Source of the DNA: Perkinsus chesapeaki ATCC PRA-425
Lineage: Eukaryota > Protista > Perkinsozoa
DNA: 62,163 bases
Direction: 5' to 3'
NCBI GenBank assembly: GCA_013115145.1
Contig: JAAPAO010000148.1
Coordinates: 1 to 62,163 of the forward strand
The position numbers and the translations under genes are program-made. Below are positions 483 to 7,151 of this stretch, in pieces (the stretch's first letter is position 1; every line of letters starts with the position of its first letter). The notes below the pieces were generated by a model. The model ran no database searches. It saw only the letters and a list, made by a program, of their open reading frames with translations, and had not been told where the DNA came from.

Positions 483-1138
483 CTATGATCCCCTTAGTAC
501 CCTCTTGGGTGCGTTATTTAGACTGTTCAAGCGCTTCTCACGCTCCTCGGCTTCAACAACACTAGCACGTCTCCGACCCTCTCGGATGCACCTGTCACCA
601 CCAAGTGCATTATTCACCTCTGCGTGTCACCATTTACCTTCTGCACATAAAAGTGTCGGCTTGAATGCTGGCGGAGACGCGAAACCGCCGACGGCAACCA
701 CCACAACGACAAATTTGGGTTCCGACGTCGGCGGGCATTCGCTTGGCGTAAAGAGCGCAGCCGATCAGAGCTAATACGAGCAAGCCACCGAGGACACCTG
801 AGGGAAGGGGAGGTTGAAGCGAGGTTTAAGCGATGCATAAAGATATTTTCGAGGTTGAAATGGCTACTCCCACATTAATACCTACAACAACCCATCCAGT
901 AACTTCAGAAGATTGGCTGATTCGACGCAAATGATGGGGTACATGGCCCGGTATAGAATTGGGGTCCATTGAATGAGCTCAAGGGATAATAGAAATACTA
1001 AACACCCATAACATACCAACGACAATCCACCCGCCAACAGGAACGTTCTCCTCTAATGACCGCTGAGGCTGAGGACCGTGGAGGAGGAGGAGGCTGCTGA
1101 CTGAAGTGATGGTTCCGAGAAAAGAAGAATGCTGAATG
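483..1138 (-). CDS. Downstream exons of a host single-pass membrane protein with a cytoplasmic CxxC...CxxC zinc-ribbon-like motif, interrupted by the retrotransposon
   Basis: Phase-consistent GT-AG introns 978-1016, 798-881 and 592-637 join exons 1138-1017, 977-882, 797-638 and 591-483 into an open frame: IQHSSFLG...GWIVVG|AHSM...TGWVVVG|GVLGGLLVLALIGCALYAKR...CGGCRRRF...FMCR|RCIREG...VLRGS*. Confidence 0.65.
1135..1138. repeat. Target-site duplication, left copy (AATG)
   Basis: AATG abuts the LTR at 1139; the same 4-mer abuts the other end at 6934-6937. Confidence 0.85.
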
Positions 1139-1368
1139 TATGCTCGATCCTCCTCTTCTCTGGTGTCATGATAACTGGTTGGCATAACTCAATGTCAGGT
1201 TAGTGTTGGTTAATGGGGTTAACAACGGGTGGTCAACAAACGACCAAGTGAGATCCCGAGACGGAATTCACTGATCGTGGGACAGAACATGCATTACATG
1301 CAACATGTGCGCACGCCCCCACACTGGTGACGCTTACGCCCGTCGAACAAGCTACTCTAGAGAGTACA
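1139..1368 (-). repeat. 3' LTR (230 bp)
   Basis: Matches 6704-6933 except C1257 versus T6822. Reads TGTAC...GCATA on the minus strand. Confidence 0.95.
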
Positions 1369-1380
1369 TGCCCTCCCCCG
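1369..1380 (-). other. Polypurine tract (GGGGGAGGG) just upstream of the 3' LTR
   Basis: Minus strand reads CGGGGGAGGGCA immediately before the LTR's TGT. Confidence 0.75.
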
Positions 1381-1512
1381 AAAGAAGGAAGAAAGCATTA
1401 ACATGTCTATAACATGGTAAGTAAAAACCGCGCAACAGTAAACCCTGTCACGTCTTAGCTCTATCCGCACAGGGACAGGTAAAAAAGCTATTAGTCTTAT
1501 GATTGCTAAAAG

Positions 1513-4500
1513 CTAAACCGGAACTCCAAGCTGCTGAAACATCTTCTTCAGGCCAGCACGAAGATATCCTTGCTGAGTAAGGGCTACCTTTGGACCAGAG
1601 CAGACCAGATCGTTGTAATCGATGATGACCAAATGTTGGGCGTCCCCTTGCGTATCATACCACTTGCCTTCGTCGTCGACCACTAATCGCTGGACGGACA
1701 ACATTTCATCGAAGACATTGTTCTTAACCACTCGACCAAGATCAATACAGACAACACTCTCCGGATCATCTACGGGGCTCCGGTAGGCAATGAGGTCTCC
1801 CTCACAAAGGTTTTCTGGTAAAACTTGCTTCAACCCCTGCAAATCCGGGATGCCGAGATCACCAAATCGACGAACCATCTCCGAGGAAGGTGCCTGCCAG
1901 AGCTGCCAGCAAGGCGCTCCTCCTCCGCCTTTCAGACTCGCCATGGAACCGTCAATCTTCTCTACCACAAAAGGGCCAAGAACTTGACGTTTATGCAGAC
2001 CATCTACAATAATACGGAAAACCTTGTCCCCCACCTGTACTGGCTGTTCATGACGAACTGGACCACCGTCAAGGTTTGATACTCTGGCCTCCGCGATGAA
2101 ATGTTTCCAAACCATCTGCAAGGACCCCAATTCCTCTTTTAGTTTATCCAAGTATTCAGCGGCATCGACAGTCGACTCCGGAGCATCCGCATCCGCCCCC
2201 CCTTCCAAAAGGGATTGCAGGCCATCACGGGTCCGACCCCCATACAGCAGTTCCTCGGGGGTCACCGGACCGCCATACCTAGGCGATGTATTATGGAGGC
2301 GGCTAATAAAACCAAGATACTTGAAGGCTATAGCAAGAGGAATATTAGCAGTAAGACGGCGAAGACCCGCCTTCACAAATCCGACGGCTCTTTCAGCTTC
2401 GCCTTGGGGTTGCGGGTGGTACCCAGCCCCCATAACATGATCGATGTTGAAGGCCCGCATAACACCTGCGAGTACCGACGAAGCGAAACCCGCGCCCCGA
2501 TCTGACTGAACGTGCCGAGGAACTCCATAACGCATACTCCAGGCAATGAGGCCATCCACAGTCGAGGCCGCTGTCTGATCCGGAGTAATACGGAGCTCCA
2601 ACCAAGTACTAAAGGTATCAACCATAACCAAAATACAGGGGTTCTGGATTATGCCCTGAGTGGTATCCACAGTGATGCCATTAAAGGGCCCTAGAAAATC
2701 GACAACCACCGACTCAAACCGGGAGCGTATAGCTCTCGGCCGCTGCCCTGTAAGGGGCACAACCCGGAGGGCTTCCCTCCTACAGGAAAGACACCGCTGG
2801 CAAAAATCAGTAACCTCCCTACGGAGGTTAGGCCACCAGCACTCTTCCTGCACTCGTGCTAGCATACCGGTAGCCGTTGAATGATGCCAGTGGGCTGCTC
2901 CTAGAACTTGGGCTCGAAGGGTTTTTTCCCAGGGTGTCCTTGGCTGATGAGGGACATAGAGCCGAGCTCTCTTATCAGCATCAATAAAGTAGAGACAACC
3001 ATCCTCTCCAATAGTTAAGCACCAACTCAAGCCTCTCTCTGCGTCTGTTCTTTCAGCCTCTGGCTTTAAAAAACGACGCAACTGCACTCCCCGCCATCGT
3101 GAGTCATCAGTAGTTAAGGCTTGAGCACAGCGATCACGGAAGATGGGGGTTTTTACCCCTAGTCCCTCGGTGGTACCCTGGATCAGAAAAACGGCCTTCT
3201 GTCTGGGGGGTAAAGGCTCAGGCAATTTAAGGTCAGCAGTGCACCTTGATAATTCGTCCGCCTGGCCGTTTTCTTTCCCCTTAATATGACTAGTACGAAC
3301 AGCTATACCTCGCTCCTTCATGGCAGCCTCCGCCTCAGAAAATTGCTGAAGCATTTTCCTAACCGCGAGTTTGTCATAACCTTTGAGATGATGTAGATGA
3401 GTATCACACCAAGAGACAGTACTAGTATTGTCACAGAAAACTCTCACTGAAGTGATGTGATGAGCTATACTAGTAATACGAGCCAGTGCCTTGATAAGGG
3501 ATACCACCGCGAACAGCTCTCGCCGGTTGGTGTGCCAACGCAGTCCTGCCGGAAAAGTTTTGCACTGTTCAAGAACTACCCGACCGTCAGGGGTCTGAAT
3601 GGTCCATCCAAAACCCGACTCACAAGCATCCGAATAACCGTAGAGCTCAGTGACATCCGCCCAGCTAACATGCTCGCATGGTTTTGATAGATCACGGACT
3701 CGGTCAAAGAGCTCTTCAAGCCGCTTTCGCCCCTCTTCCCCAATTGGAAGGGGCTCATCCCACGACGCCCTATCAGTAGCCAAACCATAAGAACCAGACC
3801 ACGACCGTAGAGAGTCGAAAATCAAAGATCTCACCGGATGCTGGCATAACGGATCAGGGGCCAAACCACAGAGACGAAAAAGCTGGCGCTTAGAGACCGT
3901 ATCCCCAATCTTCCACAGGCGAGGGTCAACGGTTGGGCATGAAGCACAAAGGTTACCATTCTTAAAATACCAGTTCAAACCAATATGCTTCTTGGGCACG
4001 TCCAAGATCCTGTCTGCTTTCGCGTCAGGAAACTCAGCGGCCACGCGCTCTCCCACCCGTGAGAGGAGTTCAGATACCAAATTACCAACCACCGGATCTT
4101 CCGCGCTGACCATAAAATCATCAAAATACACAAGAAGTGTTAAACCCCTTATGTACGTAGCTCGCTCTTCAGGGAGCAGGTCCGGACATTCAGTGTTCAA
4201 TAATGCACTGTATATCGAGTGTATCAACGCTGTGGTAAAGCAGCTTAAAGCAAGGGGTCCGAACCGGACCCCGAAGGCTATCCGACGGGTCAGGAACTTC
4301 TGATTGTTGATAGTAAGGGATAGAGCCTTAGAGCGTCTCACCGTCAGGCGGTAAAAGGCTTTGGAGATATCTTTATACTGCAAATAAGCAGAGGGATAAG
4401 ACAATAGAGTGAGTGCACAGTCCGCAATGGGCAGGTCGTAGTAACCACTAGGTGGGAGGTCTCGATTCCTGCCTCTCGCGTCGGCACAGGGCCGTATGCG

Positions 4501-6750
4501 GGTTGAGGCACTCTGGGACACGACCGGGAAGATAACAATGCTCTCCCTAGGGGTCTGGCGGTCAACCCCGCCCTCATCCCCATTCCCACAAGTCCCTAGA
4601 ACTGCAGCATCCTCCTCTGGAACCCACCATCGACGCTTGAGATATTCATTAATTTCACCAGCAAAGTACTGGCGCTGGTCATCGTCCAGCTTCGATATCA
4701 AGTGGGTAGAATAATCAAACTGTCTGGCGCGCGGGTGATTTTCATTGTCTTCCTGCCAATCAAACTCAAATACGTGAGTCTGACCGGGACAGTCCCGGAT
4801 ATCTCCCCCAGCCTCGTCGATGGGCCGTATACGAAACATATACCATTTGTTGCCAGGGATCCTAGTCCAGTCCGCATAGTGGGTAGTGAGATAGGCCACC
4901 CCTCTCTCTACCAAAGTATCCAGAGAGACCTGAGGGTCCAGGACAAAATCCTTCCTAGAGGGGTACCGGCTGTAATAGTGGAAGGAGTCAGTTGTGAGGC
5001 CTTCCCCCCACAGGACCTGAAGATCTTCAGCTGGTGGTACCTCGACCAAGTCCTCAGCAGATTGGGTGCCATCAGTCGTTTGGCAAACCTCTGCCGATAT
5101 TCGGACAAGCTTGTAACCAAGTTTTTCCAATGTGGGCCTACCCACTAGCACATCGAACTTTGAGAAACCGTCTTCAAAGGAACCATCGTCAGGAACATAG
5201 AAAGCCACATCAACAGACTGATCTTGACCATATATGCAAAGCTCTGCCATGCGAGCCAATTTGACAGGACCGCCTAAGGACTGGGCGACCATCCCATCAT
5301 CACCAAGGCTAATGATATCGGCTCGGAGCTTCGCGCATGCCTCGCTTGAACATAAATTGATAGTTGAGCCTGTGTCAAAACAAGCCCGCAGCTGCTGAAC
5401 GGCGCCGTTCTGGTCGGTAAACTCTAGGGTATCTACGCAACTGTCTTTGTCGGAATATTCATGGGATAGAATATAAGTGTGGCCACTTCTCGTCACCTTC
5501 TGGCCACCTCCCTCTCCTTTTTCCTCCTTCACCGCAACACTTTTGCGGCGAGGACAGTCCCGCTTCATATGCCCTTGTTCACCACATCCAAAACAGGCCC
5601 CTGCTGCCTTGGACTTAGAATTTCTTGCACCTCGCTTGACATCAGCGGAGGGACCAACACCTCCCGACTGTGTAACTACCGAGGCTGAAGCAGACTCCTC
5701 TGTCTTAACTATGGTATCTTTGGTGATTTGGGCCCCATTTTTAGAGCCTCCAGTTTTTCCCGAGTGGCTAGGCTTCCCTCCTCCGTTTCTAGATTGATCG
5801 CCTAAGATGCCTAGGACAGCATCCAAGCTGGCCGGGCTATGACGCTGCGCTAGGTCCTCAAGCAAAGCTATAAACTCATGTATCTTCTTCGTCTTCTTTA
5901 AGATAGGGAACTCCTGAGCCCTCGCTACTTGGTTCTTGAAATAAGGGTATACCGACAGAGCCTTTAGTAACTTATCACAACGTATGTGCCATGATGTACC
6001 CGTGAAGTCAACGTCCTCCAATTGAGCGTAAACCATACGCTCTCTTGCTAAGAAGTCAGACCAAGCCTGCCAACTTTTGGGAAAAAGATTGCACCACCTC
6101 CTGAGAGCTTCGGATGTGTCCTGAACCTTGAACTCTTCAGTAGCTCTCTCAATGGCATCTTGCAAGACTTCATTACAGCTTGATAACCATTTACTAACTT
6201 GATCCACCATAGTGTCTTCTTGGTCCTTCTCCCCTTCCTCGGCTACCTCAATCAGATGCCAGGCCACCAAGGAACCATGCCGGGCTAGGCAGCATTCCAA
6301 AACACGTCTGGAAATGGTAGAAGGAGTGACATAGCTTAATAGCATTAGAGTCAACGGTGACGCCAGTCTACTCAACCGGGCGCATGACTGAACTTTCTGC
6401 CAGTTTGCTTCAGTCCAATCCGCCGTCTTGTGGATACCCCACCCCTTGCAAAAGGCCTCGAACGAGTAGACTTGCTTGCCCGAAGGTAGAAGCAAGCCCA
6501 GCCCCTTAGTCTGATTATACGGGGCAAACTGACCATAACCAAGGAGGGTGATCACTGCCTGGTGAGGATCTTCCAGGCGTCTAAGTGACTTCTCCGCGAG
6601 GTAGTCCACGTCTTCAGGGCGAGCATTGACCTCAGCGTCCATAATGACCTCGTCCAGGAAAGAGAATCGAGAGTAATCGAGATGTTTCTCGGATGATGCA
6701 CCATATGCTCGATCCTCCTCTTCTCTGGTGTCATGATAACTGGTTGGCAT
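1513..6750 (-). CDS. Gag-Pol polyprotein (1745 aa): capsid-like region, CCHC knuckle, aspartic protease, RT, RNase H, DDE integrase with GPF motif, C-terminal extension
   Basis: CFGCGEQGHMKRDC; FDTGS; DISKAFY...YFDD; YSDACESGFGW...RRELFAV...FCDNTS...ADELSR; HWHH...CQRC; VDFLGP...VDTFS...SDRG...EAER; LGPF. Confidence 0.97.
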   Translation of the reverse strand: MPTSYHDTREEEDRAYGASSEKHLDYSRFSFLDEVIMDAEVNARPEDVDYLAEKSLRRLEDPHQAVITLLGYGQFAPYNQTKGLGLLLPSGKQVYSFEAFCKGWGIHKTADWTEANWQKVQSCARLSRLASPLTLMLLSYVTPSTISRRVLECCLARHGSLVAWHLIEVAEEGEKDQEDTMVDQVSKWLSSCNEVLQDAIERATEEFKVQDTSEALRRWCNLFPKSWQAWSDFLARERMVYAQLEDVDFTGTSWHIRCDKLLKALSVYPYFKNQVARAQEFPILKKTKKIHEFIALLEDLAQRHSPASLDAVLGILGDQSRNGGGKPSHSGKTGGSKNGAQITKDTIVKTEESASASVVTQSGGVGPSADVKRGARNSKSKAAGACFGCGEQGHMKRDCPRRKSVAVKEEKGEGGGQKVTRSGHTYILSHEYSDKDSCVDTLEFTDQNGAVQQLRACFDTGSTINLCSSEACAKLRADIISLGDDGMVAQSLGGPVKLARMAELCIYGQDQSVDVAFYVPDDGSFEDGFSKFDVLVGRPTLEKLGYKLVRISAEVCQTTDGTQSAEDLVEVPPAEDLQVLWGEGLTTDSFHYYSRYPSRKDFVLDPQVSLDTLVERGVAYLTTHYADWTRIPGNKWYMFRIRPIDEAGGDIRDCPGQTHVFEFDWQEDNENHPRARQFDYSTHLISKLDDDQRQYFAGEINEYLKRRWWVPEEDAAVLGTCGNGDEGGVDRQTPRESIVIFPVVSQSASTRIRPCADARGRNRDLPPSGYYDLPIADCALTLLSYPSAYLQYKDISKAFYRLTVRRSKALSLTINNQKFLTRRIAFGVRFGPLALSCFTTALIHSIYSALLNTECPDLLPEERATYIRGLTLLVYFDDFMVSAEDPVVGNLVSELLSRVGERVAAEFPDAKADRILDVPKKHIGLNWYFKNGNLCASCPTVDPRLWKIGDTVSKRQLFRLCGLAPDPLCQHPVRSLIFDSLRSWSGSYGLATDRASWDEPLPIGEEGRKRLEELFDRVRDLSKPCEHVSWADVTELYGYSDACESGFGWTIQTPDGRVVLEQCKTFPAGLRWHTNRRELFAVVSLIKALARITSIAHHITSVRVFCDNTSTVSWCDTHLHHLKGYDKLAVRKMLQQFSEAEAAMKERGIAVRTSHIKGKENGQADELSRCTADLKLPEPLPPRQKAVFLIQGTTEGLGVKTPIFRDRCAQALTTDDSRWRGVQLRRFLKPEAERTDAERGLSWCLTIGEDGCLYFIDADKRARLYVPHQPRTPWEKTLRAQVLGAAHWHHSTATGMLARVQEECWWPNLRREVTDFCQRCLSCRREALRVVPLTGQRPRAIRSRFESVVVDFLGPFNGITVDTTQGIIQNPCILVMVDTFSTWLELRITPDQTAASTVDGLIAWSMRYGVPRHVQSDRGAGFASSVLAGVMRAFNIDHVMGAGYHPQPQGEAERAVGFVKAGLRRLTANIPLAIAFKYLGFISRLHNTSPRYGGPVTPEELLYGGRTRDGLQSLLEGGADADAPESTVDAAEYLDKLKEELGSLQMVWKHFIAEARVSNLDGGPVRHEQPVQVGDKVFRIIVDGLHKRQVLGPFVVEKIDGSMASLKGGGGAPCWQLWQAPSSEMVRRFGDLGIPDLQGLKQVLPENLCEGDLIAYRSPVDDPESVVCIDLGRVVKNNVFDEMLSVQRLVVDDEGKWYDTQGDAQHLVIIDYNDLVCSGPKVALTQQGYLRAGLKKMFQQLGVPV
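6686..6703 (-). other. Primer-binding site, probably tRNA-Gly
   Basis: TGGTGCATCATCCGAGAA directly follows the 5' LTR. It is complementary to a tRNA 3' end ...ATGATGCA-CCA, and cytosolic tRNA-Gly species commonly end in UGCA-CCA. Confidence 0.8.
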
Positions 6751-6933
6751 AACTCAATGTCAGGTTAGTGTTGGTTAATGGGGTTAACAACGGGTGGTCA
6801 ACAAACGACCAAGTGAGATCCTGAGACGGAATTCACTGATCGTGGGACAGAACATGCATTACATGCAACATGTGCGCACGCCCCCACACTGGTGACGCTT
6901 ACGCCCGTCGAACAAGCTACTCTAGAGAGTACA
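6704..6933 (-). repeat. 5' LTR (230 bp), contains the gag-pol ATG at 6750
   Basis: Direct repeat of 1139-1368. Confidence 0.95.
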
Positions 6934-6945
6934 AATGGACCACAT
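6934..6945 (-). CDS. First four codons (ATG TGG TCC ATT, MWSI) of the interrupted host gene; includes the right TSD copy 6934-6937
   Basis: Removing the element and one TSD gives ATG TGG TCC ATT CAG CAT..., in frame with the 1138-483 exons. A polypyrimidine tract plus AG acceptor lies at 6960-6980. Confidence 0.6.
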
Positions 6946-7151
6946 TACCAGTCCATCAACTAAAAGGAGGAGGAGAAGGACACACGTACAGAAGGGCGAG
7001 CGCTAGGATCGGCTCTCCGTCGCTCGCCACGAAAATGATTTGGCTCTTCGGAAAATGCTTGCTCAACTTTTTGAGCCAGTTATTGGGTCGGTTTTCGGGG
7101 CGTGAATTATCTTCATTGTTATTGATTCAGTTGTATTTAATACTGTTGTGA

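Follow-up and report, generated by a model that had tools for sequence, protein, structure and literature searches.

A recently inserted LTR retrotransposon in a first coding exon of a predicted membrane RING-finger gene of Perkinsus chesapeaki, with an LTR start codon in the host reading frame

When a long terminal repeat (LTR) retrotransposon lands within the first codons of a gene, and its 3' LTR offers a start codon in the frame of that gene, has the element evolved a way to rescue the gene that it disrupts, or is the fusion a by-product of how the element is built? The question is raised by contig JAAPAO010000148.1 of Perkinsus chesapeaki ATCC PRA-425 (assembly GCA_013115145.1; C531 in the contig numbering used below), analysed over positions 1 to 62,163 of the forward strand (62,163 nt, hereafter the window), where an element on the minus strand interrupts a first coding exon of a gene transcribed in the same direction. 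From this arrangement the initial annotation had proposed that the element family may target the 5' ends of genes and rescue the disrupted gene itself. The explanation favoured here, and considered probable, is that of an ordinary and very recent insertion of an intact LTR element, the in-frame fusion being a by-product and not an evolved rescue. Unless another contig is named, coordinates refer to the window, and all features of the element and of the gene are on its minus strand.

Positions 1139-6933 are occupied by one intact LTR retrotransposon. Its two LTRs (TGTACTC...GAGCATA; 5' LTR at 6704-6933, 3' LTR at 1139-1368) are 230 nt long each and 100% identical, and they are bordered by a 4-bp target-site duplication (CATT on the minus strand; upstream copy at 6934-6937, downstream copy at 1135-1138). 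A solo LTR with an internal deletion on contig C69 carries GCGC on both sides, which confirms the LTR ends and the size of the duplication. The 18-nt primer binding site (6686-6703) lies directly 3' of the 5' LTR and complements the 3' end of tRNA-Gly(GCC) plus CCA, as established by matching it to the 3' ends of the tRNA-Gly(GCC) genes on C411 and C633. The polypurine tract (CGGGGGAGGGCA, 1369-1380) abuts the 3' LTR on its upstream side.

Gag and pol form a single frame of 1745 aa without interruption (1513-6750). In a scan of this frame with domain profiles, Integrase_H2C2 and the integrase core (rve) were above the Pfam cutoffs, the CCHC knuckle was slightly below its cutoff (20.6 bits for a cutoff of 20.8), the matches to RVT_1 (17 bits vs a cutoff of 29.6) and to an aspartic protease (12.8 bits) were weak, and RNase H was not detected. 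The order knuckle, protease, reverse transcriptase, integrase is the one expected of an integrase-last element, Ty3/gypsy-like by order alone. Read depth is 72.5 over the interior of the element and 74-75 over its flanks, and about three times that over the LTR; the equal depth of interior and flanks, together with the threefold depth of the LTR, indicates one full copy, and a census of the family in the assembly likewise turned up three or four LTR fragments beside a single full copy. The element is thus single-copy, and it is both intact and very young. At C1406:928-1000 (L006) the family's polypurine tract and the beginning of its LTR are preceded by sequence unlike the interior of the element; this copy, truncated where the contig stops, may represent a relative that is non-autonomous or recombinant.

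The insertion is in sense orientation, 11 nt past the ATG of the exon designated 1a and after its codon 4. It separates the first 12 nt of the exon (ATG TGG TCC ATT, 6934-6945) from the remainder (1017-1138), which ends in NVPVGGWIVVG and is followed by a donor GT at 1016-1015 in phase 1. The reconstructed empty site reads ATG TGG TCC ATT CAG CAT; upstream of it the frame is closed by a stop, and an AG stands 14 nt ahead of the ATG. At present the host ATG opens only a 7-codon frame (MWSICTL and a stop). The ATG of the 3' LTR (1183-1185) is in frame with the host coding sequence: from 1185 it reads MPTSYHDTREEEDRAY-IQHSSFLG...WIVVG, stop-free up to the GTATGT donor at 1016. This LTR-host open frame (979-1185) consists of 16 codons from the LTR and the target-site duplication, then of exon 1a, and if unspliced it would stop at 979-981. 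Its predicted product would include the peptide MPTSYHDTREEEDRAYIQ... and, across the LTR/host junction, ...EEDRAYIQHSSF.

The initial annotation thus placed the insertion correctly, after codon 4 and in the same orientation, as the 4-bp CATT duplication and the alignment of the exon 1a ATG with Perkinsus olseni (below) confirm. Its reconstruction of the empty site, including the AG 14 nt before the ATG, and its fusion frame without a stop before the donor at 1016 are also right. On the minus strand at 6946-6960, just upstream, is a short frame of three codons (ATG GAC TGG TAA) whose stop overlaps the ATG of exon 1a as TAATG. A promoter and terminator scan of the locus used a bacterial consensus and is uninformative for Perkinsus.

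Whether the fusion matters to the host depends on what exon 1a is, and for this the gene was compared with its P. olseni orthologs. Host exons were searched one by one; the two host flanks were joined without the element solely for the P. olseni alignment and for reading exon 1a. A profile of two host exons retrieved four protein clusters, in which the best match was P. olseni KAF4680591 (457 aa) and the second its paralog, both combining a C3HC4 RING with a transmembrane helix and a CxCxxC...CxxC ribbon; the P. olseni orthologs P0001 and P0015 carry the RING domain (zf-C3HC4_3, 1.8e-15 in the ortholog). KAF4680591 and KAF4694378 resemble the host gene in exon order, transmembrane helix, zinc ribbon and RING, and in P. 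olseni the locus lies between a CEP76/Neuralized gene and a paralog, in synteny with the window; they differ in having no retrotransposon in exon 1a and only 53 nt of intron after exon 4.

The ATG of exon 1a aligns with a P. olseni ATG (ATGTGGTCC vs ATGCGGTTC), and the exon is 130 nt long vs 133 nt in P. olseni, in identical phase. Its last ten codons differ between the species at five third positions only, and synonymous sites are otherwise near saturation (differences in exon 3 are 3/1/37 by codon position). An in-genome paralog begins MFSNHS, to be compared with MWSIQHS here. Judged by this conservation, exon 1a is a real coding first exon. Its N-terminal part of about 30 residues is unalignable between P. 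chesapeaki and P. olseni; since the residues replaced in the fusion lie within this stretch, the swap would probably be tolerated. The N-terminus is weakly hydrophobic here (KD 1.83) and its P. olseni counterpart is not hydrophobic, so that a conserved signal peptide is unlikely; the initial annotation had suggested that the acidic LTR extension might disable a weak one.

Downstream of the insertion lies a second, tandem look-alike of this exon, exon 1b (882-969). It has its own ATG (967-969), located 8 nt after an AG (978-979), and a donor GT at 881-880; it ends in TGWVVVG before that GT where exon 1a ends in GGWIVVG, and both are in phase 1. The start of exon 1b is intact. The tandem pair of first coding exons (882-1138) is conserved in P. 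olseni (L014:5124-5450; L045:3043-3400). KAF4680591 starts at exon 1b (MDPNS), and KAF4694378, the second P. olseni copy, starts in exon 1a and splices straight to the transmembrane exon. No annotated P. olseni model has both exons, each using one, and the 39-nt intron at 978-1016 is therefore doubtful; the same 39-nt stretch is in frame in both species. The three-intron model of the initial annotation, in which this short intron joined the two look-alikes, is not confirmed for that reason, and exons 1a and 1b may be alternative starts defined by the spliced leader. No second copy of exon 1a was found in the assembly. A search for short proteins, annotated or derived from transcripts, that cover the 5' part of the gene was negative as well, and a search over the full-length range returned the query only.

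The gene also extends further than had been described. Exon 3 (638-797) encodes the transmembrane helix along with one half of the zinc ribbon (CxCxxC), and exon 4 (501-591, CIREGRRR...APKR) ends at 501 (AAG AGG before GT, donor 501/500; donor GT at 500-499). The TAG at 483-485, at which a complete protein had been thought to end, is intronic and lies five codons into the intron. The gene resumes at base 260 of contig C2803, which carries the later exons including the C3HC4 RING (RING exons at C2803:548-909, 85-97% identical to the P. olseni ortholog). The host exons checked, to ortholog residue 300, are intact and 84-100% like the ortholog. The product predicted for the host gene thus crosses the membrane once and has a zinc ribbon and, at its C-terminus, a RING finger (RING-type E3 ligase-like).

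The break between the two contigs was caused by a dispersed repeat in the intron after exon 4 (1-247), within which C531 and C2803 overlap by 23 nt; this intron measures about 736 nt here vs 53 nt in P. olseni. On C1413:24252-24546 the repeat is found in one piece, and C531 and C2803 jointly carry one gene. The repeat, represented at this locus by 1-247 and C2803:1-76, has more than 30 partial copies, many of them at contig ends. A paralog of exon 3 on C2803 is 61% identical. On contigs C534 and C215 (L046, L047) the 3' half of the RING gene is present in partial copies that are 74-97% identical and lack the transmembrane exon; one of them is FOL47_001910, annotated by NCBI as a partial protein. 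Proteins almost identical to those encoded here bear NCBI names from Perkinsus chesapeaki, and one of these maps to C534. P0012 was considered as an allele of the host gene and rejected, because it lies on C534 and belongs to a partial paralog.

Why an LTR should offer a start codon at all is explained by the layout of gag. The first ATG of the gag-pol frame is at LTR position 184 (6748-6750 in the 5' LTR), with a stop two codons earlier, and from there the frame stays open through the primer binding site, which falls within gag and is translated as G-A-S-S-E-K. Gag starts were compared with those of related families of the same genome (C440, C2834, C426/C3164 and C3084, plus a frameshifted copy on C135; L036-L041), whose gag proteins are 31-41% identical to that of the window element. 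At least five related families place the gag ATG upstream of a tRNA-Gly(GCC) primer site, which translates as G-A-S-S or G-A-P-S, and in the related families protein similarity already begins upstream of the next Met. Because the related families place the gag ATG before the primer site, the LTR ATG is taken as the real gag start, and a gag that starts in the LTR is a trait of the clade rather than an accident of one copy. One and the same stretch doubles as primer site and coding sequence throughout this clade. With gag beginning in the LTR, the end of every copy has an ATG and a short stop-free frame running into the flanking DNA. It follows from this layout that the sole coincidence needed at the present locus is that of frame (1 in 3), or of orientation and frame (1 in 6).

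The other LTR ends of the family were surveyed for similar fusions, and none was found. At C3178 the junction itself forms TAA, and the LTR adjoins the protease-like sequence of another element; at C69 the ATG is deleted, and the LTR is sited about 540 nt past the end of an open reading frame; at C3238 the LTR is truncated before the ATG, in surrounding DNA that looks non-coding. In a sister family, the six LTR ends with non-element flanks read out 9, 11, 19, 20, 47 and 50 aa in total, which is what random sequence gives. The in-frame case described here stands as the one such fusion, and integration targeted to the 5' ends of genes found no support, with only three or four other LTR fragments to judge from.

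Signals by which a transcript could begin in the LTR were also considered. Perkinsus mRNAs are trans-spliced (PMC2868825), and 30 copies of the Perkinsus/dinoflagellate spliced leader were counted in the genome, vs 0 for a reversed control. The LTR contains a motif CTAAC...AG that ends 2 nt upstream of the ATG; the AG ahead of the LTR ATG is not conserved among the related families. No spliced leader was found in the LTR of the window element at up to three mismatches; by eye, a weak resemblance to it (CCGT...ATCT...TTGG) can be seen about 55 nt before the LTR ATG. In the C135 element (L037, about 2520-2610, minus strand) an exact copy of the host spliced leader precedes the gag ATG by 29 nt, and the tRNA-Gly primer site is identical to that of the window element; the gag frame of the C135 element appears shifted right after the primer site.

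Expression and polymorphism were examined in sequencing runs. A run search gave five DNA holders of the locus and two small possible RNA runs, which contained no sequence from it. An empty allele was sought in two DNA samples from two studies, and no contig joining 1138 to 6934 was found there, both junctions with the element being present.

Several explanations can be set against these observations. The 3' LTR could provide the start codon together with a promoter or trans-splice acceptor, so that a chimeric mRNA would be made in which host MWS is replaced by 16 LTR codons and the gene is rescued. This would agree with the stop-free in-frame fusion up to the exon 1a donor, with an LTR ATG that is the genuine start of gag translation, with the CTAAC...AG motif in an organism that trans-splices its mRNAs and holds 30 copies of the spliced leader, with an N-terminus unconstrained between species at the place of the swap, and with two samples lacking an empty allele. 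It is nevertheless unlikely: the two RNA runs yielded nothing of the locus, a third of all such insertions would be in frame, the exon 1b start is independent of the element, and the AG before the ATG is not kept in the related families. The two identical LTRs also mean that the insertion is too young for the survival of the host exons to be informative on selection. Of the earlier proposal, the swap of host MWS for 16 LTR codons therefore stands as a property of the reading frame, and self-rescue is left unsupported by a gag start that simply reads outward, by an intact exon 1b and by other LTR ends that form no fusion. The more general proposition that gag-in-LTR elements inserted in sense bring a portable start codon, and that with trans-splicing the exon 1a isoform is now expressed from the 3' LTR with a swapped N-terminus, is likewise held to be unlikely.

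The insertion and the second repeat in the downstream intron might, on the other hand, have silenced or crippled the gene, a loss that would be tolerated owing to close paralogs. The element now puts 5.8 kb between exon 1a and its promoter region of roughly 200 nt, a repeat has lengthened the intron that follows exon 4, and close paralogs lie next door on C2803 and on C215 and C534; but the exons checked are intact, although this is equally expected of a very young insertion, and silencing is regarded as improbable, to much the same degree as rescue by the LTR. Least credible, and very improbable, is that exon 1a is untranslated, the gene starting at the exon 1b ATG (969) and the element lying in the 5' untranslated or promoter region without disrupting any codon. 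The P. olseni model that begins MDPNS and the lack of sequence conservation in the first 30 codons of exon 1a would fit such an arrangement; the five differences confined to third positions in its last ten codons, the aligned ATG, the length difference of exactly 3 nt, the second P. olseni model that uses exon 1a and the similar start of the in-genome paralog all argue for translation.

Under the explanation by an ordinary recent insertion, an intact element (primed by tRNA-Gly(GCC), with the order PR-RT-RH-IN, that is protease, reverse transcriptase, RNase H and integrase, and a 4-bp duplication) would have inserted recently in P. chesapeaki, landing in sense orientation within exon 1a, the upstream one of two tandem alternative first coding exons. 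Gag beginning in the LTR gives each copy an outward ATG and a short open frame, and here this frame would coincide with that of the host by chance, as one insertion in three is expected to do. Should the gene still be expressed, the simplest way would be through exon 1b, for example by addition of the spliced leader at the AG 8 nt before its ATG, an isoform started in the LTR being only a possible extra. Four points weigh against this explanation. With two small possible RNA runs that are empty for the locus, a chimeric mRNA may still be made; the fusion frame stays open as far as a good donor and replaces unconstrained residues, so that a fusion protein could work; the evidence that exon 1b serves as a first exon comes from a single computational gene model and from the conservation of its sequence; and the insertion is present in every copy sampled, no empty allele having been found, and is thus not obviously harmful.

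As it stands, the value of the locus is mostly descriptive. It offers an element of P. chesapeaki that is dated, intact and probably active, a gag-in-LTR layout that is shared across a clade and in which the tRNA-Gly primer site is translated, and a corrected model of a predicted membrane RING gene that has two tandem first exons and is split across two contigs. Were the chimeric isoform real, a retrotransposon would here have provided a host gene with a new translation start, a clean case from nature, in an alveolate that trans-splices and in which promoters matter less.

Host genes can acquire an alternative promoter or first exon from an LTR, as with the mouse IAP element at agouti and the LTR-driven isoforms of mammals. 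The present locus is alike in that host exons directly follow a sense LTR, from which a chimeric transcript could begin; it is unlike in that the chimeric RNA is observed in those cases and the LTR part is usually non-coding, whereas here the arrangement is seen at the DNA level and the LTR would add 16 codons. Within the same genome, the family of the C135 element shares the identical tRNA-Gly primer site with the window element, whose LTR differs in having no copy of the spliced leader at up to three mismatches. The closest parallel in layout is yeast Ty1/Ty2, in which gag (TYA) starts within the 5' LTR and the primer binding site is inside the reading frame. Unlike Ty1/Ty2, the window element has its integrase last, in contrast to the Ty1/copia order, is primed by tRNA-Gly(GCC) and not by the initiator tRNA-Met, makes a duplication of 4 bp and not 5 bp, and lives in an alveolate with mRNA trans-splicing; like them, it and at least five related families have a gag ATG in the LTR before the primer site, which leaves the 3' LTR with an ATG that reads outward.

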